Made by a program: the position numbers and the translations under genes. Shown piece after piece: positions 50,612 to 64,000 of a stretch of DNA of 64,000 nucleotides. The stretch is from Piromyces finnis finn (taxonomy: Eukaryota; Fungi; Neocallimastigomycota), in assembly GCA_002104945.1 (NCBI GenBank), contig MCFH01000022.1:434001-498000 (forward strand), read 5' to 3'. Under the pieces are notes generated by a model. The model had not been told where the DNA came from. It did no database searches and saw only the letters and a program-made list of their open reading frames with translations. The stretch's first letter is position 1, and the number at the start of each line of letters is the position of its first letter.

Positions 50612-53131
50612 TTAATTTGCACATGATTCAGTTTTACTTCCATTCCCTACATGTGTAGTATTTTTTATATTACTTGTATATATATTACTGGACTTGTTGA
50701 GCATACTCATACTTTTTAATTTTGATCTTAAAGCAACATATTGAGTAATATCTGTACCATTAGAATCAATCATATCAAATCCAGGTTTAGTAATAAGTAA
50801 ATGAACTCTTGAACCAATTAATATATAAACACATGCAAAATGAAGGAAACAATTGAAAAGAATTGTTAAAAAGAAATATAGTGGATAATTTTTACCGTCC
50901 AGTTTTTTAATTAATTCATTAACAAGATAGTCAGAAATGTTTGTACTGAATATTACAAATGTATAACAAATGTCACCAAATTTTTTTGAATGACTTCCAG
51001 TAGCAATAATCATAAATATAAGAGCAATAAACTATTTTATTTATTTTAAAATTATTTAAATAAAGAAATTAGTATAAACCATTTTTCAAATAATTATAAA
51101 TTAATAATTAACAATAAATAAAAAATTATTAAATATTGTTTTAGTACTATTTGCTATTTGTAAAATAAAAATATAATATAATATAACATAATATTTATAT
51201 GATATAAAAAAGTTACTACTTACAACAAAACCAAGGTATGCTTGATATACTTTATTTAGAGATTGATAATTACTGTATTCTCCAACAGGAATACGAGAAT
51301 AACCAATTGAACCAATTGCTTCATAGAAAAATTCACACGAAAATATAATAACTACCTTGTATATAACTGCAATACTAATTGCAGTCATAATACTATATAA
51401 TAAACGCTTATTATCTAATTTATTTGACATAATCGACTTTGTTTTGAAAATACAATAAATACGATAAGCAACTGCAAACATTGGAATATAAATTAGATTT
51501 GTACCAAGTGCTTCAATTACAACAAAAATTTTAATTTTAGCAATTGAGTATGACGGAATATATTTCAATAACTTTATCATATTTAAAGCACATCCTCCTA
51601 CAATTAAATTACAAAACACCGGTGATATAACCTTAATATAAGGATGATTTCTTAATCTATAAGCCATATAAATTATAAATAAACAGAATATAATTGTTAA
51701 AACAATTATGGAGATAGATAATATTCCAAATAAACCTAAGTTAGAAGTAATTAATTCATTCAAGTTTTTAAAAATTAAATTTATATTAATAACATTATTA
51801 TATTGTATAAAATTTCTAATTTTTAATGGAAGAAGACATAATATTTCATAAAATGGTACCATATATTTTGACTTAAATATATCTCTTATATATAATTTCT
51901 TAGTTTTTTCCATGGTACTACATATAACTGGATTATCATTACAATAGGTTTGCATGTCTTCGTCTGAATCTTTTTTAGTAAAATCAAATGTTGGAATACA
52001 ACCAAATTCATCAGCACGTAAAAGTTGTATTTTCTTATCTGTAAGGATAAGTGCGATTTCTGCGAGTATTTCTGGTTTAATATCACTATACTTATTGGCA
52101 ACTAAAAGTTTATGATTAGTTACACTCTGATGTTTTGGTAAAGGTGTCATAGGAAGATCAACATTATTGTATTTTAATTTTTTAAATATAATATTATGAG
52201 ATGCTTTTGCTTTAAAAAAAGTTGATCCATTTGTCATATACTCGTAAAATGCATTATCTAGAGTTAAATCAAATGTTTCTTTTATTTGATTAGAGTAACT
52301 TTTAACAAAATTTTTGAAATTCTTTAACAAAGAATTGGAAGTATTATTATAAAATAATTTCATATGATCTGGGTCATAATCTGGTGATAAATTGAATTTA
52401 TCACTTGCATATTCAACAAAAAGATTTAATAAATCATTATCGTCAGAAACTGAAATGATTTGGGGTTGAGAATTTTTTTTTAAATTTACTATTAAATCAT
52501 CCCATGTATAACTTTCCATATTATTTATTAATTCTTGGGTATTCTTATAGTTTGGATCTAGCTCATCAAGATGGTAGTAAAATACATTAAAATCATTTTC
52601 ATAAGGAATGCCAATTAATTTTTTTTTATATATACCATAACTTAAACTTTTAGGATCATGAAATTCGAGATCTTTCATGTCAATATATTTGGAGAGATCA
52701 TGAAATAATTCAAGAGATGGATATCTATGTCCAACATTTTTATGAATTATATTACTTTGTATTGTGGCCATTTCATTAAATAAAATTCTTTCGTCAAGCA
52801 CTACCATATCATAACTTTTATCTTTTAATTTTTTAGATAAAAAATTCATGTAATCAAGAGCCATAGAGTTATAATGTGGATCACTTGGTGGATAAGGATA
52901 AAATAGAAAATTTACTTCATAATCTTTAAGTATTTCATTATCTTTAACTTTTTCGTTAAAATATCCACTTAAATATTCTATATATTTGTCTTGATATTCA
53001 TAAGTTTTAAATGTTTCAGATATATCAATTTGTTTTAAACATACTTTAATTCTTTTCTTTTCAGATTTTACAGTAACTAATAATAAAGATATCAAAAAAA
53101 ATAGAAGGAATCTTTTAAATTTTTGAGTCAT
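50612..53131 (-). CDS. Class C-like GPCR with N-terminal sugar-type solute-binding domain (receptor 1); exons 53131-51224 and 51031-50612
   Basis: Signal peptide, SBP motifs (DMVVLD, LIGIPYENDFNVFYYH, TWDDL) and seven hydrophobic segments. HPYIKVISPVFCNLIVGG and AYRIYCIFK resemble the TM2 and TM3 motifs of 7tm_3 receptors. One intron falls within TM5. Confidence 0.85.
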
Positions 53132-53617: not shown

Positions 53618-56015
53618 TTAAACTCTTTCTGTATATATATTAGATTTACGTTTAATATATTTTAAAGTACTTATTCTATTTTTTAATTTAAATCTTAATC
53701 CAATATATTGTGTGGCATCATTATAACTGTTTGTATTACTTTGACTTGTATTTTTTTCAGAGTTGGGGTATAATAAAATTAGTACAATTCTTGATACTAC
53801 CAAAACATAAACGCAACTAAAATGAAGGAAACAATTAAAAAGAATAGTTAAAAAAAAGTATAAAGGATAGTTATCTCCACCATCTAATTTTGTTATTAGG
53901 CGTTCAACAAGAAAATCTGATATATTTGTACTGAAAATAACGAACGTATAACAAATATCACCAAAATTCTTAGATCTACTTCCAGTAGCAATAATCATGA
54001 ATATTAATAAAATAAACTATTTAAATTTGAAAAAATAATAATTTTAATAAATATTATTTTTAATTTTTTATATATTATTTTCTTTAAATAATAGTACGTA
54101 CAACAAATGTTAGGTATATTTGATAAATTTTATTGAATAGTTCATTATTTGAATAATTTCCTACGGGAATGCGGGCATACGTAACAGAACCGATTGCTGT
54201 GTAATAAAAGCTACATGTAAAAACAATTACTATTTTATAAATAACAGCAATACTAATTGCGGAGAAAATACCTATTAAAAGACGTTTATTATTTAAAGAA
54301 TTTGACATAAATGATTTTGTTTTGTATATACGGAAAATACGATATGCAACTGCAAACATTGGAATATAAATTAAATTTGTTCCAAGAGTTTCAAGAATAA
54401 GAAATATCTTAATTTTTCCACGGGAATAGGGAGGAATGAATTTTAATAATTTTATCATATTTAAAATACACCCAATAACAATTAAATTACAAAATATGGG
54501 TGATATAACTTTAATGTATGGATGTTCTTTTAATTTGTATGTCATATAAATAACAAAACAACAGAATACAATGACTAATATGGTAAGAATTATTGATAAT
54601 ACTCCATATACTCCTAAATTATCGGTAATAAATTCATTCACATTTTTTAATGAGAATTCTATATATTTAATATCATTTGTAATAAAAAAGTTTTTAAATC
54701 GGATTGGAATAAAGCATAATATTTCATAAAATGGTACCATTGTGTCAGAACTAAAAATATCTCTAATATAAAGTTTTTCCACTTTATCCATTGCATCACA
54801 AATAACTGGATTATTATTGCAATAATCTTGTAAATCTTGATCGGAATCCTTTTTAGTGAAATCAAATGTTGGAATACTTCCATATTTTTCAGCACGGAAT
54901 AATTGTGCTTCTTTATCGGTAAGAATGAGAGCCACTTCAGCAAGAAGATCAGGTTTAATATCACTATATTTATTTGCAACTAAATATTTATTTGTTGTAG
55001 CACTTTGATATTTTGGAGGAAGAGATAAAGGAATTCCATCGTTTCCATATTTCGATTTAAAAAGGAAGTTATGAGAAGCCTTTGCTTTAAAGAATGTTGA
55101 ATTTTTTGTTAAGAAGGATGAATATGCATCATCTAAAGAAGTACGAGCTGCTTTTATTGGCTCATTATTAGGTGAAAATGATTTTACTAAATCACGAAAT
55201 TTTGTATAAAAATCTGTAGATTCTTCATCATCATAGAATATCTTAATATAATCTGGATTATATTCTGGAGATAAAGTATGTATATTATTTGTATATTCAA
55301 TTACGAAATTTAACACATCATTGTCATCACCCAATGCAAGTACAAAAGGTTGAGAATTCTTTTCCATTTTTTCCAATAAAGATTCCCATGTAAAATCTTT
55401 CATGTTTTCTACTAATGCCATTGTGTCACTGCCATTTGCATTTGAATTTTCACCATCTTTATGATAATACAATACATCGAAATCGTATTCAAACGGAATA
55501 CCATAAATTTTTTTCTTATACATTCCATAACTTAAAATTTTTGGATCATGAAATTCTAGATCATCCTTATTAATATATTTGGTTAAGTCGTGTAATAATT
55601 CAAGAGAAGGTTGTCTAAATTTAGTTTCTTTAAAAATTCTTTCAGATTCCATTAAAGCGATATCATTAAATAAAATTCTTTCATCAAGCAGTATCATATC
55701 ATATTCTTTTCTAGGCAATACTTTAGCCAAATCATTCATATAATCAAATGGTACTGATTGACCATTAGTTTCAACAGGAATATATGGATAAAAATAGATA
55801 TCGAGTTCATAATTATTAAGTCTTTCATTATCTTTTACTTTTTCTACAAAATAATTATTTAATTCATTTCTATACTTTTCCCAATCATCATGTAGTACAG
55901 TTCTAGGCATATCAGGTTGTTTTATACATATTTTGATTCTTTGTTTTTTAGCAAAAACTGTAATAAAAACAAAAAATAAAATAAAATATAAACCAGAAAT
56001 ATTTCGAAGTCTCAT
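53618..56015 (-). CDS. SBP-class C-like GPCR (receptor 2); exons 56015-54102 and 54016-53618
   Basis: Same architecture and intron position as receptor 1, with IYGIPFEYDFDVLYYHKD, FTWESL and HPYIKVISPIFCNLIVIG. Confidence 0.85.
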
Positions 56016-59000
56016 TATCCAATTTTGTTATTAAAATTAAAAATATTTTTAATATATATATTTCTTTTATTTTATTTTATTAAAATATATTAAAAAATTA
56101 TGTATATAATTTACATTTAAATAAAGTTTTAATATGTTTTTTACTTTTTTTTCTATTTATTATTCATAATTTTAGTATAACTATTTTTTTTATTTAAAGA
56201 TTGATATTATATTTATATTTCATATGTATTTTATAAATATCTTACTCATAATAATCACATCATAAATAAAAACATTATACTTAATAATAATAAAATATAT
56301 AAAATGGTAAATAAATAGAGAATTTGAAATAAAACATATTTCAAACAGTATATATAAAGATATATAGAATATAGAAAAAATATGTTAAAATTTTTCCTAA
56401 ATTATATCTAATAATATAAAGAAATAATTATTTTAAAATAATAGAAAAAAATTCATTTAGACATGAAATTAAATTATTTAGCTAACTTGAAATCAGAGAA
56501 ACCATTTTTGACCTTTATTTAAAAAATTTTTCTAGATCTAGAGAAGAATTTAACATTAATGATACAATTTATTATAAATATGTATATTATACATGTAATA
56601 AATAAAATATCATAAATATATAAAGATTCTCTTAATTATGAAACAAAAATATTTAAATAAATCGAAAATAATTATAAATCAATAAAAATAGTTTATTAGT
56701 TTATATACTATGTAGTTTTATTTATAAAGAATTAAATTTTATTATATAAATTTCTAATTCAAAACTTTATTATGTATATTTCTCTCTTTTCTAAATATCA
56801 AAAAATATTTTTTTTGACAATTTATACTATATAAACTCATTTTTAAGCAAGAACTTTTTTAAGACAAAGTACTTTTTAATCTATTTTTTTACTAATTAGC
56901 TTGATTCAATAACTAATTTCCAATGATAATTTTAAAAATAAAAATTAGGAAAAAATTTATAGTTCGATAATAATAAAAATAAGTATTTAGACTCTCTCTC
57001 AAAACTTTATTTATTTTATTTATTTAATTTAAAAAAAATAATTTAACATGAATCAAAAAATAAAAATAAAAGTTACAAAAATAAAATCTAAAGAACATTT
57101 TATTATATAAATTCATGAAATGAATAGCTGCACAAAAATTTATATTGAATATTTTCTTTCATAGTTTATTTATTCATTATATAGTAATTTTTTATATCTA
57201 TTTTATCTATAATATATTTATTATAAGTATTTAGTTTCGTTTTATCCTATTTAATAAAAAAAGATGAAAAAATAAATATGATAATAAATGAGGAAAATAT
57301 AAATATTTAAAACCAAAATTTAGAATCTAAAATTTATTTATATTTAGAAATTTATTTTTATTTTTATAATAATATTTTATTATTTAACTTAATAAAATAT
57401 TTAAATTTGATTTATCATTTTTTTTAAAATATTATAAATAAAAACAATTAATAAAAAAAAAAAAAAAAGAATTAAAAAAATATAAAAATTTAATAGCGTA
57501 TTTATATATATTTATATATGCTAATAATTATCTTTTATTAATTATTACTTATAACTTTGCGTTTAGGGAATATAATAAAATGAAAATTCGAAACACTTCA
57601 AAAATATTCCTACTTTTTATAACTTGTCTATTTACGACTATTTATGCTAATAAACAAAGAATCAAAATATGTATAAAACAACCTGATATGCCTAGAACTG
57701 TACTACATGATGATTGGGAAAAGTATAGAAATGAATTAAATAATTATTTTGTAGAAAAAGTAAAAGATAATGAAAGACTTAATAATTATGAACTCGATAT
57801 CTATTTTTATCCATATATTCCTGTTGAAACTAATGGTCAATCAGTACCATTTGATTATATGAATGATTTGGCTAAAGTATTGCCTAGAAAAGAATATGAT
57901 ATGATACTGCTTGATGAAAGAATTTTATTTAATGATATCGCTTTAATGGAATCTGAAAGAATTTTTAAAGAAACTAAATTTAGACAACCTTCTCTTGAAT
58001 TATTACACGACTTAACCAAATATATTAATAAGGATGATCTAGAATTTCATGATCCAAAAATTTTAAGTTATGGAATGTATAAGAAAAAAATTTATGGTAT
58101 TCCGTTTGAATACGATTTCGATGTATTGTATTATCATAAAGATGGTGAAAATTCAAATGCAAATGGCAGTGACACAATGGCATTAGTAGAAAACATGAAA
58201 GATTTTACATGGGAATCTTTATTGGAAAAAATGGAAAAGAATTCTCAACCTTTTGTACTTGCATTGGGTGATGACAATGATGTGTTAAATTTCGTAATTG
58301 AATATACAAATAATATACATACTTTATCTCCAGAATATAATCCAGATTATATTAAGATATTCTATGATGATGAAGAATCTACAGATTTTTATACAAAATT
58401 TCGTGATTTAGTAAAATCATTTTCACCTAATAATGAGCCAATAAAAGCAGCTCGTACTTCTTTAGATGATGCATATTCATCCTTCTTAACAAAAAATTCA
58501 ACATTCTTTAAAGCAAAGGCTTCTCATAACTTCCTTTTTAAATCGAAATATGGAAACGATGGAATTCCTTTATCTCTTCCTCCAAAATATCAAAGTGCTA
58601 CAACAAATAAATATTTAGTTGCAAATAAATATAGTGATATTAAACCTGATCTTCTTGCTGAAGTGGCTCTCATTCTTACCGATAAAGAAGCACAATTATT
58701 CCGTGCTGAAAAATATGGAAGTATTCCAACATTTGATTTCACTAAAAAGGATTCCGATCAAGATTTACAAGATTATTGCAATAATAATCCAGTTATTTGT
58801 GATGCAATGGATAAAGTGGAAAAACTTTATATTAGAGATATTTTTAGTTCTGACACAATGGTACCATTTTATGAAATATTATGTTTTATTCCAATCCGAT
58901 TTAAAAACTTTTTTATTACAAATGATATTAAATATATAGAATTCTCATTAAAAAATGTGAATGAATTTATTACCGATAATTTAGGAGTATATGGAGTATT

Positions 59001-59316
59001 ATCAATAATTCTTACCATATTAGTCATTGTATTCTGTTGTTTTGTTATTTATATGACATACAAATTAAAAGAACATCCATACATTAAAGTTATATCACCC
59101 ATATTTTGTAATTTAATTGTTATTGGGTGTATTTTAAATACTATAAAAGTATTAAAATTCATTCCTCCCTATTCCCGTGGAAAAATTAAGATATTTCTTA
59201 TTCTTGAAACTATTGGAACAAATTTAATTTATATTCCAATGTTTGCAGTTGCATATCGTATTTTCCGTATATACAAAACAAAATCATTTATGTCAAATTC
59301 TTTAAATAATAAACGT
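54282..59316. repeat. Large inverted repeat: arms 54282-55946 and 57652-59316 (1665 bp each), spacer 1705 bp
   Basis: The arms are reverse complements with a constant coordinate sum (113598) at both ends. The encoded 555-aa segments differ at only three residues, and I noticed five nucleotide differences without checking every base. Confidence 0.95.
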
Positions 59317-60038
59317 TTATTTATTTGTGTGATAGTAACAATTTCTCTATCAGTAATTTACAAATCAGTAATTGCAATATTCTGTAGACTTTATTATGAA
59401 TCTGTTGGTTCTGTTAGATATGCCCGTATCCCAATTGGATACTATACAAATCATGAAACTTTGGATAAAATATATCAAGTATATCTCACAATTATTGTAT
59501 GTATTATCAATTTATTTAAATTAAAAATCATAATAAAATAGTTGGATGCGTAATAATATTATAATAGTAATTAAATACTCATGTCATTTTTTTCTTATAT
59601 ATATATATTTAGTTTATTTCTCTTTTATTTATGATTATTGCTACTGGAAGCCGGTCCAAGAAATTTGGTGATGTTTGTTATACATTTGTTATCTTCGGTA
59701 CAAATATATCAGATTTTCTTGTTGAACGCCTAATAACAAGATTAGATGGTAAAGAGTATTATCCTTTGTATTTCTTTGTTACAGTATTCTTTAACTGTTT
59801 ACTTCATTTTATTTGTGTTTATATTTTGGTTGGATCAAGAATTCATTTACTTATTAATAATCCCAATTTTGATTTTGTTAGTAGTAGTAATGGTACTACC
59901 AATGCTTCAGATGCTTCCCAGTATGTTGCATTAAGATCAAGAATAAGAAGTATGAGTATAGTTAAAAGATACAGTAGTATGATATCTACTAAAAATAGTG
60001 GCTATTCACAAACAAAGAGCGGAAGTACTATAAGATAA
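57580..60038 (+). CDS. SBP-class C-like GPCR (receptor 3); exons 57580-59496 and 59613-60038
   Basis: Same architecture. The ectodomain to TM3 is near-identical to receptor 2; the signal peptide, TM4-7 and tail differ. Confidence 0.85.
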
Positions 60039-61584: not shown

Positions 61585-64000
61585 ATGGGAATAAAATTTT
61601 CAAAAATATTTTTTTTCATTTTAATTTATCTATCTTCCGTTTTATGTGAAGAGAATCAAAAAATAAAAATATGCATTAAACAACAAGATATGACAGATTC
61701 AGTATCATTTGAATACTGGGAAAACTATAAAAATGAATTAAAAAATTACTTTGCAGAAAAAGTAAAAGATAATGAAAAACTTAATAATTATGAACTTGAT
61801 ATATATTTCTATCCGTACTTAGTTGAAACTGATGGGCAATCTAAAATCTTTGACTATATTAATAATTTAGTAGATGGTCTAAGTAACAAAGAATATGATA
61901 TGATAATACTTGATGAAAGAATATTATTTAATGATATAGCATTAATGGAATCTGAATGGATTTACAAAAATATAAATTATAGACAACCATCACTAGAATT
62001 ATTACATGATTTATCTGAATATATTAATAAAAAAGATTTAAATTTCCATGATCCAAAGGTTTTAAGTTATGGGATGAATGAAAATAAAATTTATGGTATT
62101 CCTTTTGAATATGATTTCGATGTATTGTATTATCATAAAGATGGTGAAATTTCAAATGAAAATAGTGATACATTGACGTTAATAGAGAATATGGAAGATT
62201 ATACATGGGAATCTTTATTAAAACAAATGGATAAAAATGGTCAATCTCTTAGAGTTTCATTGAGTGACGATAATGACTTATTAAATTTCATAATTGAATA
62301 TACAAGTAATAATTATAAATTGTCTGTAAAAAACAATCCAAATTATATGAAATTATTTTATAATGAGTCTTCATCAACTTATTATACTAAATTACGTGAT
62401 TTAGTAAAATCATTTTCCCAAAATAAGGATGTAAAAAGTGCTATTGAATCAACATTAAATGACGCATATAATAGCTTTTTGGCGAAAAATTCAACATTCT
62501 TTAAAGCAAAGGCTTCTCATAACTTCCTTTTTAAATCGAAATATGGAAACGATGGAATTCCTTTATCTCTTCCTCCAAAATATCAAAGTGCTACAACAAA
62601 TAAATATTTAGTTGCAAATAAATATAGTGATATTAAACCTGATCTTCTTGCTGAAGTGGCTCTCATTCTTACCGATAAGGAAGCACAATTATTCCGTGCT
62701 GAAAAATATGGAAGTATTCCAACATTTGATTTCACTAAAAAAGATTCCGATCAATATTTACAAGATTATTGCAATAATAATCCAGTTATTTGTGATGCAA
62801 TGGATAAAATGGAAAAACTTTATATTAGAGATATTTTTAGTTCTGACACAATGGTACCATTTTATGAAATATTATGTTTTATTCCAATCCGATTTAAAAA
62901 TTATTTTTTATCTAATGATCTTGAATACATAAAAAGCTCTTTACAAAATGTGAATGAATTTGTTACAAGTAATTTAGGTATATATGGAACATTATCTAAA
63001 ATATCTGTTTTATTTGTTATTGGATTTTGTTGTTATGTAATTTTTATGACATACATATTAAAAGAACATCCATATATCAAAGTTATGTCACCACCATATT
63101 GTAATTTAATTGTCATAGGATGTATTTTAAATATGATTAAATTAATGAAATTTAATCCACCATATACACTTAAAAAAATAAAAACATATCTTTTTATTGA
63201 GACCCTCAGTACTAGTTTAATTTTCATTCCAATGTTTGTAATTATTTATCGAATTTATTATATATACAAAACAAAATCACTCCCTAAAAAATCTACATAT
63301 AAAACACTTTTTTTAATTTGTGTAATAGCAGCTATTTTTGTAGGAGTTATTTATAATGTGGCTATTATTTTTAACAATAAATTTTATTACGAAACAGTTG
63401 GTTCTGTTAGTGATACACGTATTCCAATAGGATATTTTTCAAATTACGAAACGTTAAATAAAATTTATAATGGATATCTTACAATTATTGTATGTATTAT
63501 ACTGTAATTTATTATTTAAAATCAAAAATCTTTCATAATAATATTTATTTATCAAGTGCTAACCTTTAATTTTTTTTCATATAGTTCATTACTATTTTCA
63601 TAATGGCTATTTATACCGGAACTTTATCAAAAAGATTTTTGGATATTTCATATATATTTGTTATTTACACTACAAATATTGCTGATTATATTGTTGAACG
63701 TTTAATAACAAGATTGAAGGGTAGTATGTATTATCCTATGTTTATTCTCTTAATAGTTTTATTTCATTGTATTGTTCATTTCAATTGTGTTTATCTTTTG
63801 ATTGGGTTAAGAATTTACTTTATTAAAAAAAATCCAAGATATAATTTTGATAATATTTATAATACAAATGTTGCACAACTCATTCCATTGAAATATAAAA
63901 CAAAAACTATGAGTGTATTTAGAAGATTTAGTGTTTTATCGTCAACAAGTAGTTTTAATAATAATCCTTCTATTAGAAGTGGTGGAGCAAGTGGTTATAA
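61585..64000 (+). CDS. SBP-class C-like GPCR (receptor 4); exon 1 at 61585-63489, exon 2 from 63585 open to the window end
   Basis: Same architecture and intron position. Exon 2 reads FITIFIMAIYTGTLSKRFLDISYIFVIY...YYPMFILLIVLFHCIVHF... with no stop before 64000. Confidence 0.85.

Follow-up and report, generated by a model that had tools for sequence, protein, structure and literature searches.

Probable ectopic gene conversion behind a near-identical sensor block in two divergently transcribed Piromyces finnis receptor genes

How do two neighbouring genes come to be almost letter-for-letter alike over most of their first exon and plainly different in everything around it? The question is raised by two receptor genes, here called R2 and R3, that lie head to head near the end of a 64,000-nucleotide stretch of DNA (the window), which covers positions 434001-498000 of contig C135 (MCFH01000022.1) in the genome assembly of Piromyces finnis. 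An earlier, sequence-only reading of this stretch had proposed that R2 and R3 are an old pair of paralogs homogenised by gene conversion, rather than the product of a recent whole-gene duplication, and had seen in the outcome a possible way of rewiring sugar sensing. We find that ectopic (interlocus) gene conversion between old, divergently transcribed paralogs is the probable origin of the shared block, a reading to which we assign a probability of roughly 0.8 on the basis of the sequence comparisons described below.

P. finnis is an anaerobic gut fungus, and its assembly is reported to be of the PacBio continuous long read (CLR) type (Haitjema et al. 2017). The assembly amounts to 56.46 Mb in 232 contigs. 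Across the window, the G+C content is ~19%, and the proteins encoded there are identical to annotated P. finnis proteins.

The block shared by R2 and R3

R2 occupies positions 53618-56015 on the minus strand, with exon 1 running from 56015 to 54102, an intron of 85 nt from 54101 to 54017 (GTACGT...TAG) and exon 2 from 54016 to 53618 including the stop codon. It was delineated from its open reading frames (ORFs) and their translations, with splice sites placed via protein P0001 of the public model BCR36DRAFT_412519. R3, represented by the public model BCR36DRAFT_327504 (protein P0002), occupies 57580-60038 on the plus strand, with exon 1 at 57580-59496, an intron of 116 nt at 59497-59612 (GTATGT...TAG) and exon 2 at 59613-60038 including the stop codon. 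R2 and R3 are intact; their splice sites are canonical, each has a public gene model, and alignment of P0001 with P0002 places the splice junction inside the fifth transmembrane helix (TM5). Exons were searched one at a time, and comparisons over the full length relied on P0001 and P0002. The public R2 model begins with M-I-F-A-K-K and has no signal peptide, while the continuous R2 ORF starting from the ATG at 56015 encodes a typical hydrophobic signal peptide (55947-56015); the 5' end of BCR36DRAFT_412519 seems to be wrongly modelled, in that a spurious mini-exon has been joined to an AG within the signal-peptide codons.

Repeat finding returned an inverted pair within the two genes, 54065-55984 and 57614-59533. 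Within it, an ungapped comparison of 54282-55946 (minus strand, arm A) with the reverse complement of 57652-59316 (plus strand, arm B) gave only 5 mismatches over 1665 bp, at R2 coordinates 54386, 54449, 54456, 54457 and 54714, and thereby bore out base by base the 99.7% identity claimed by the sequence-only reading. The arms make up the 5' four-fifths of each exon 1, correspond to residues 24-578 of R2 and 25-579 of R3, and encode the solute-binding protein (SBP) ectodomain, TM1-3 and intracellular loop 2 (ICL2). Neither arm carries an indel and both ORFs remain open. The limits proposed for the block, from just after the signal peptide to about TM4, also held: it begins at K-Q-R-I-K, directly after the hydrophobic signal peptide, and ends at ...N-N-K-R-L, which is the end of ICL2 plus the first 2-3 residues of TM4 in an AlphaFold2 (AF2) model of R3. 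Both edges are sharp: identity is 64-76% immediately 3' of the block and ~50% in the signal-peptide codons.

Outside the arms, little resemblance is left. The arms are separated by a unique spacer of 1705 bp (55947-57651) that holds no ORF of at least 60 amino acids and consists of the two signal-peptide coding pieces (55947-56015 on the minus strand and 57580-57651 on the plus strand, dS ~1.0) and, between the start codons, a divergent intergenic region of 1564 bp (56016-57579) in which both presumed promoters lie. A search of the spacer for inverted homology, as a trace of an old palindrome, returned AT-rich chance matches only, and an "identity" of 71-77% reported by MAFFT for the upstream DNA was dismissed as alignment inflation in DNA of 85% A+T. 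The introns differ in length and do not align. The tails end in ...KRKSNIYTERV and ...SQTKSGSTIR, respectively, exactly as had been read from the translations.

The contrast is most telling at synonymous sites. Synonymous and non-synonymous divergence (dS and dN) between R2 and R3 was calculated per segment by the method of Nei and Gojobori, giving a dS of 0.005 and a dN of 0.003 for the block, against a dS of 1.01 for the signal-peptide codons, 1.00 for the rest of exon 1 (TM4 to extracellular loop 2, ECL2), 0.58 for TM5-7 in exon 2 and 0.78 for the tail. At the block borders, the step at synonymous sites is thus 100- to 200-fold, on both sides and in register. As the excess identity extends to synonymous sites, purifying selection cannot account for the block. 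The same figures (dS 0.58-1.01), together with the unalignable introns and spacer, confirm the divergence that had been noted for signal peptides, upstream DNA, introns, TM4-7 and tails.

They also bear on an alternative in which the whole gene, or a large segment, was recently duplicated in inverted orientation and its ends then diverged fast. R2 and R3 are adjacent and inverted, just as such an event would leave them. However, selection could not produce a rise in dS from 0.005 within the block to ~0.6-1.0 in the coding sequence on either side of it, and near identity does not extend through the introns or the upstream DNA, where no alignment is possible. Furthermore, the unconverted TM4-7 segment of R3 is nearer to two paralogs on another contig (C156a and C156b, 80.5% identity) than to that of R2 (75.1%; branch support only 0.70, 445 nt), which suggests that R2 and R3 are not simply young sisters and that the pair is old. 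The dS step rules out a recent whole-gene duplication, and we regard this alternative as having next to no chance of being correct, in line with the preference that the sequence-only reading had expressed for conversion of an old pair.

Origin, edges and direction of the tract

A site-permutation test of the GENECONV type, which the sequence-only reading had itself suggested, was run on a nine-gene alignment and compared the longest run of concordant polymorphic sites with that in 2000 shuffles. For R2-R3, the longest run comprised 672 polymorphic sites and was matched in 0/2000 shuffles. The same result of 0/2000 was obtained for R2/R3 against another window paralog, R4, as well as for three further pairs of family members, R1-R5, C156a-C156b and C162a-C162b. 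A run of 37 bp shared by R2 and R5 in TM6 also passed the test and was discounted, as it lies within the most conserved peptide of the family.

We also weighed an artefact of assembly or polishing, in which the arms would really be more diverged and would have been homogenised by long-read correction or consensus building. In an assembly of the CLR type, local overlaps inside repeats can blur small differences between paralogs, and the presence of several near-identical blocks in this receptor family could reflect a systematic effect. Blurring, however, acts only on copies that are already within a few per cent of each other and cannot turn a divergence of ~25-50% into one of 0.3%. The arm edges are exact to the base and keep to the register of the reading frame, the five substitutions between the arms show that the copies were not merged by the assembler, and the absence of indels and the intact ORFs likewise speak against it. 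The flanks of each arm are unique on both sides, so that reads of a few kilobases anchor unambiguously, and, as neither the spacer nor the outer flanks are inverted copies, a palindrome from a missed adapter does not apply. An artefact is thus quite unlikely; it would at most exaggerate the identity of the arms, and the qualitative conclusion of conversion would survive it.

For the event itself, we infer a DNA break in one copy that would have been repaired with the inverted neighbour, ~1.7 kb away, as template. At least 1.66 kb, encoding the ectodomain, TM1-3 and ICL2, would have been copied in this way, and the tract would have halted where the copies were too diverged to pair, which is in the signal-peptide codons for the 5' end and at TM4 for the 3' end. 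The edges were compared with paralogs that escaped conversion. Among these, nucleotide identity is 81-90% over TM3 and ICL2 and 64-76% over TM4, the drop falling exactly at the 3' edge of the block. At the 5' edge, the signal-peptide region cannot be aligned among unconverted paralogs, and the peptide K-Q-R-I-K-I-C just after it is conserved. As the block edges coincide with the sites where homology fails across the family, conversion limited by heteroduplex formation suffices to explain them, and selection for a "module" need not be invoked.

The few differences between the arms are unevenly spread. All five fall within 433 bp at the 3' end of the block (chance if uniform ~0.001), and four of them lie within 72 bp of TM2-TM3 (54386-54457, minus strand), where three alter amino acids (M/T, L/V and L/I). 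At these four sites R2 carries the base typical of the family and R3 an unusual one; at 54714, R3 agrees with R4, and R2 is the odd one out. This clustering fits two nested events, an older and longer tract followed by a younger one over 54715-55946, but alternatively fits patchy mismatch repair or changes that arose in R3 after conversion. With regard to direction, a transfer from R3 as donor to R2 may be weakly favoured, because the affinities of the block to R4 and the C156 genes fit the 3' half of R3 slightly better and because the tail of R3 is typical of the family, that of R2 aberrant.

Some points weigh against the conversion reading or parts of it. Tree support for incongruence between tract and flank is only 0.70. 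A close relative's genome was sought for dating the event, but no usable ortholog was found: outside P. finnis, the nearest homolog comes from N. californiae at 65% identity, and that of Piromyces sp. E2 stands at 57%. At four of the five differing sites, the family-typical base of R2 speaks for the opposite direction of transfer from that given by the segment trees. Finally, if the long-read consensus mixed the two copies, the arms could in truth be somewhat more diverged than calculated.

Probable conversion tracts across the receptor family

R2 and R3 belong to four paralogous two-exon receptor genes, R1-R4, in the final 14 kb of the window, which continue just past its end with R5 and R6, both on the minus strand, to form a six-gene array. 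R4 (plus strand, 61585-64000) has its exon 1 ORF at 61585-63507 and its exon 2 from ~63600, continuing beyond the window end. It carries a patch of 416 bp at 62485-62900 on the plus strand that is 99% identical to R3 58492-58907 (4 mismatches) and R2 54691-55106 (5 mismatches), and outside this patch it is 72-86% identical to R2 and R3. R1 (minus strand, 50612-53131; ORFs 53131 to 51101 and 51013 to 50612) and R5 (L008, C135:498019-502615) flank R2-R4 and show the reverse mosaic of R2-R3: at a distance of 14 kb, with R5 just outside the window, and in direct orientation, they show an identity of 91-100% across TM1-TM7, intron included, and share a further patch of 97-100% identity in the C-terminal lobe of the SBP domain, the remaining ectodomain being 67-86% identical. 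The same stretch of ~400 bp encoding the SBP C-terminal lobe is thus near-identical in two independent groups, R2/R3/R4 (54691-55106, 58492-58907 and 62485-62900) and R1/R5, and may be a local recombination hotspot. R6 (L011:4828-7059, minus strand) is a more distant paralog, ~42% identical to R3, which appears to be without the TM5 intron, as its exon-1-like and exon-2-like matches lie only ~10 nt apart.

Comparable tracts were found on other contigs. C156a and C156b share ~1.5 kb at ~100% identity with diverged 5' 300 nt, intron and tail, and C162a and C162b are 99.8% identical over a 2.5-kb block that opens ~100 nt upstream of the ATG, takes in the intron and closes where TM7 ends, the tails beyond it being diverged. 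C162a and C162b form a tandem pair (L006 and L007, C162:536443-545899) and repeat the R2-R3 phenomenon in direct orientation. Both C156 paralogs (L004:1429-4012 and L005:1387-3936; C156:871762-879732) contain an in-frame TGA exactly at the linker that joins the SBP domain to TM1 (..PFYEIE, stop, YIPIRF..), and C156b is additionally frame-broken in its SBP part. The pair may consist either of pseudogenes that are still being homogenised or of genes on the way to becoming stand-alone secreted SBP proteins, such as have been reported from gut fungi; P0023, a P. finnis protein of 399 amino acids without a seven-transmembrane (7TM) domain, may be a model of that stand-alone type.

In total, the family holds at least four tracts besides that of R2-R3, with end points that differ from pair to pair. 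The comparisons support the view that the R2-R3 pair is not special and that conversion is recurrent among family members, which would make the evolution of the family partly concerted and its genes a patchwork.

The recurrence bears on an alternative that comes close to the rewiring proposed by the sequence-only reading, namely that selection maintains a partial concerted evolution in which one ligand specificity is coupled to two 7TM and tail halves or two promoters, which could include a heterodimer of R2 and R3. The cytoplasmic tail is indeed spared in R2-R3, C156a-C156b and C162a-C162b as well as in R1-R5, amino-acid identity between R2 and R3 is only 66% in TM4-7 and 33% in the tails, and G-protein-coupled receptors (GPCRs) of class C generally act as dimers. 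In class C receptors, ICL2, the third intracellular loop (ICL3) and the tail govern G-protein coupling; in R2 and R3, however, ICL2 is identical and only 2 of the 7 ICL3 residues differ. The 5' end points of the tracts vary by pair, and some tracts take in TM4-7 and the intron. The tails are the least conserved part of the genes and carry indels, which would stop heteroduplex extension without any selection, and the R2-R3 tails show a dN/dS of ~1.0-1.06, which indicates little constraint and stems mainly from the atypical tail of R2. We therefore consider maintenance by selection unlikely. As the other tracts differ in their end points and the R2-R3 edges match family-wide drops in conservation, ordinary homology-limited conversion explains the pattern.

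Linked gene families are a textbook setting for interlocus gene conversion, with examples in Caenorhabditis paralogs (PMC3966223), long-lasting mammalian gene pairs (PMC2720389) and, among fungi, FKS1/FKS2 of Candida glabrata (PMC12006411). The present case resembles these in its sharp near-identical tract between linked paralogs with diverged flanks, in the significant run test, in its recurrence and in being favoured by close spacing. It differs from them in that the R2-R3 tract spans a whole ligand-binding domain plus TM1-3 and lies in inverted orientation. No report of gene conversion in Neocallimastigomycota or in anaerobic-fungal receptor genes was found in the searchable literature.

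Receptor architecture and consequences

By sequence and structural model, R2 and R3 are predicted class C GPCRs with an ectodomain of the oligosaccharide-type (type II) SBP fold. Exon 1 alone scored 37.2 bits for R2 and 35.8 bits for R3 against the Pfam domain 7tm_3 (PF00003; cut-off 33.5); exon 1 of R1 also passed the cut-off, and that of R4 fell just under it (30.4 bits against 33.5). A profile built from 34 family members matched the 7TM domain of GABA-B2 (E = 6.7e-9). Sequence evidence for the ectodomain was weak, as SBP_bac_8 reached 16.4 bits against a cut-off of 27, profile matches to sugar SBPs in the PDB had E values of ~0.1, and a single-sequence search of PDB sequences gave nothing useful. 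The AF2 model of P0002 (mean predicted local distance difference test score, pLDDT, 84.9; predicted template-modelling score, pTM, 0.80) shows an SBP ectodomain followed by seven TM helices, TM1 at residues 469-495, TM2 at 507-527, TM3 at 533-567, TM4 at 577-601, TM5 at 625-653, TM6 at 661-682 and TM7 at 686-721, with ECL2 as a hairpin and a low-confidence tail at the end. A Foldseek search with the modelled ectodomain matched bacterial oligosaccharide-binding proteins with target TM-scores of 0.6-0.71 and E values of ~1e-10, the best fold matches being a sophoro-oligosaccharide-binding protein (5ysf), MalE3 of T. maritima (6dtq), a trehalose/maltose-binding protein (1eu8) and the cello-oligosaccharide-binding CbpB (7x0i). 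Sugar binding and G-protein signalling by R2 and R3 would be predictions from this fold resemblance.

Unlike these SBPs of bacterial ABC transporters, to which it is only 11-16% identical in sequence, the R2/R3 domain is fused to a GPCR. The GABA-B receptor (PDB 6wiv and 6uo8, among others) gives the best sequence-profile match for the family's 7TM part (E = 7e-9) and, like R2 and R3, is without a cysteine-rich domain between ectodomain and TM1; its ectodomain, however, is a type I Venus flytrap (ANF), whereas that of R2 and R3 has the type II oligosaccharide SBP fold. A motif N-P-x-F-D ... Q-Y-V-A-L-R-S recurs in the tails of most paralogs. Class C GPCRs of gut fungi with type II SBP ectodomains have been described by Seppala et al. 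2016 (PMC5168858), who catalogued P. finnis as one of three species, and by Krishnan et al. 2012 (PMC3251606), and R2 and R3 share with those receptors the arrangement of signal peptide, sugar-type SBP domain and 7tm_3 membrane domain. In neither of the two papers did we find a description of mosaic or near-identical paralog blocks. The R2-R3 tract thus adds a further, clear-cut case of an established process, in a published receptor family whose genes are already annotated.

Judged by their sequences, R2 and R3 should now have the same ligand specificity, with different promoters, signal peptides, TM4-7 and tails, and the sequences are accurately described by the phrase "one sensor, two outputs". 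The family-wide mosaic, however, argues for a neutral by-product of recombination and not for a rewiring device. There is a slim and speculative chance that the inverted, in-frame arms serve as a reversible recombination flip or, more modestly, that the ectodomains are kept identical by selection for an R2-R3 heterodimer. If the flip were real, a crossover between the arms would invert the spacer and swap promoters and signal peptides between the two TM4-7 and tail halves with both frames intact, creating a reversible switch of which output half stands under which regulation.

For the study of these receptors, homology-limited conversion has practical consequences. Short-read RNA-seq cannot distinguish R2 and R3 transcripts over four-fifths of their length, and receptor trees and ortholog assignments would mislead unless they are built segment by segment. 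Searches for ligands can take R2 and R3 as a single ectodomain. At the same time, the two genes provide a natural pair in which one sensor is joined to two unlike halves of membrane domain and tail, usable to probe what TM4-7 and the tail contribute. More generally, the tracts suggest that the expanded arrays of putative sugar receptors in anaerobic gut fungi are not evolving gene by gene, as kilobase-sized pieces, including whole ligand-binding domains, would be copied between neighbours.

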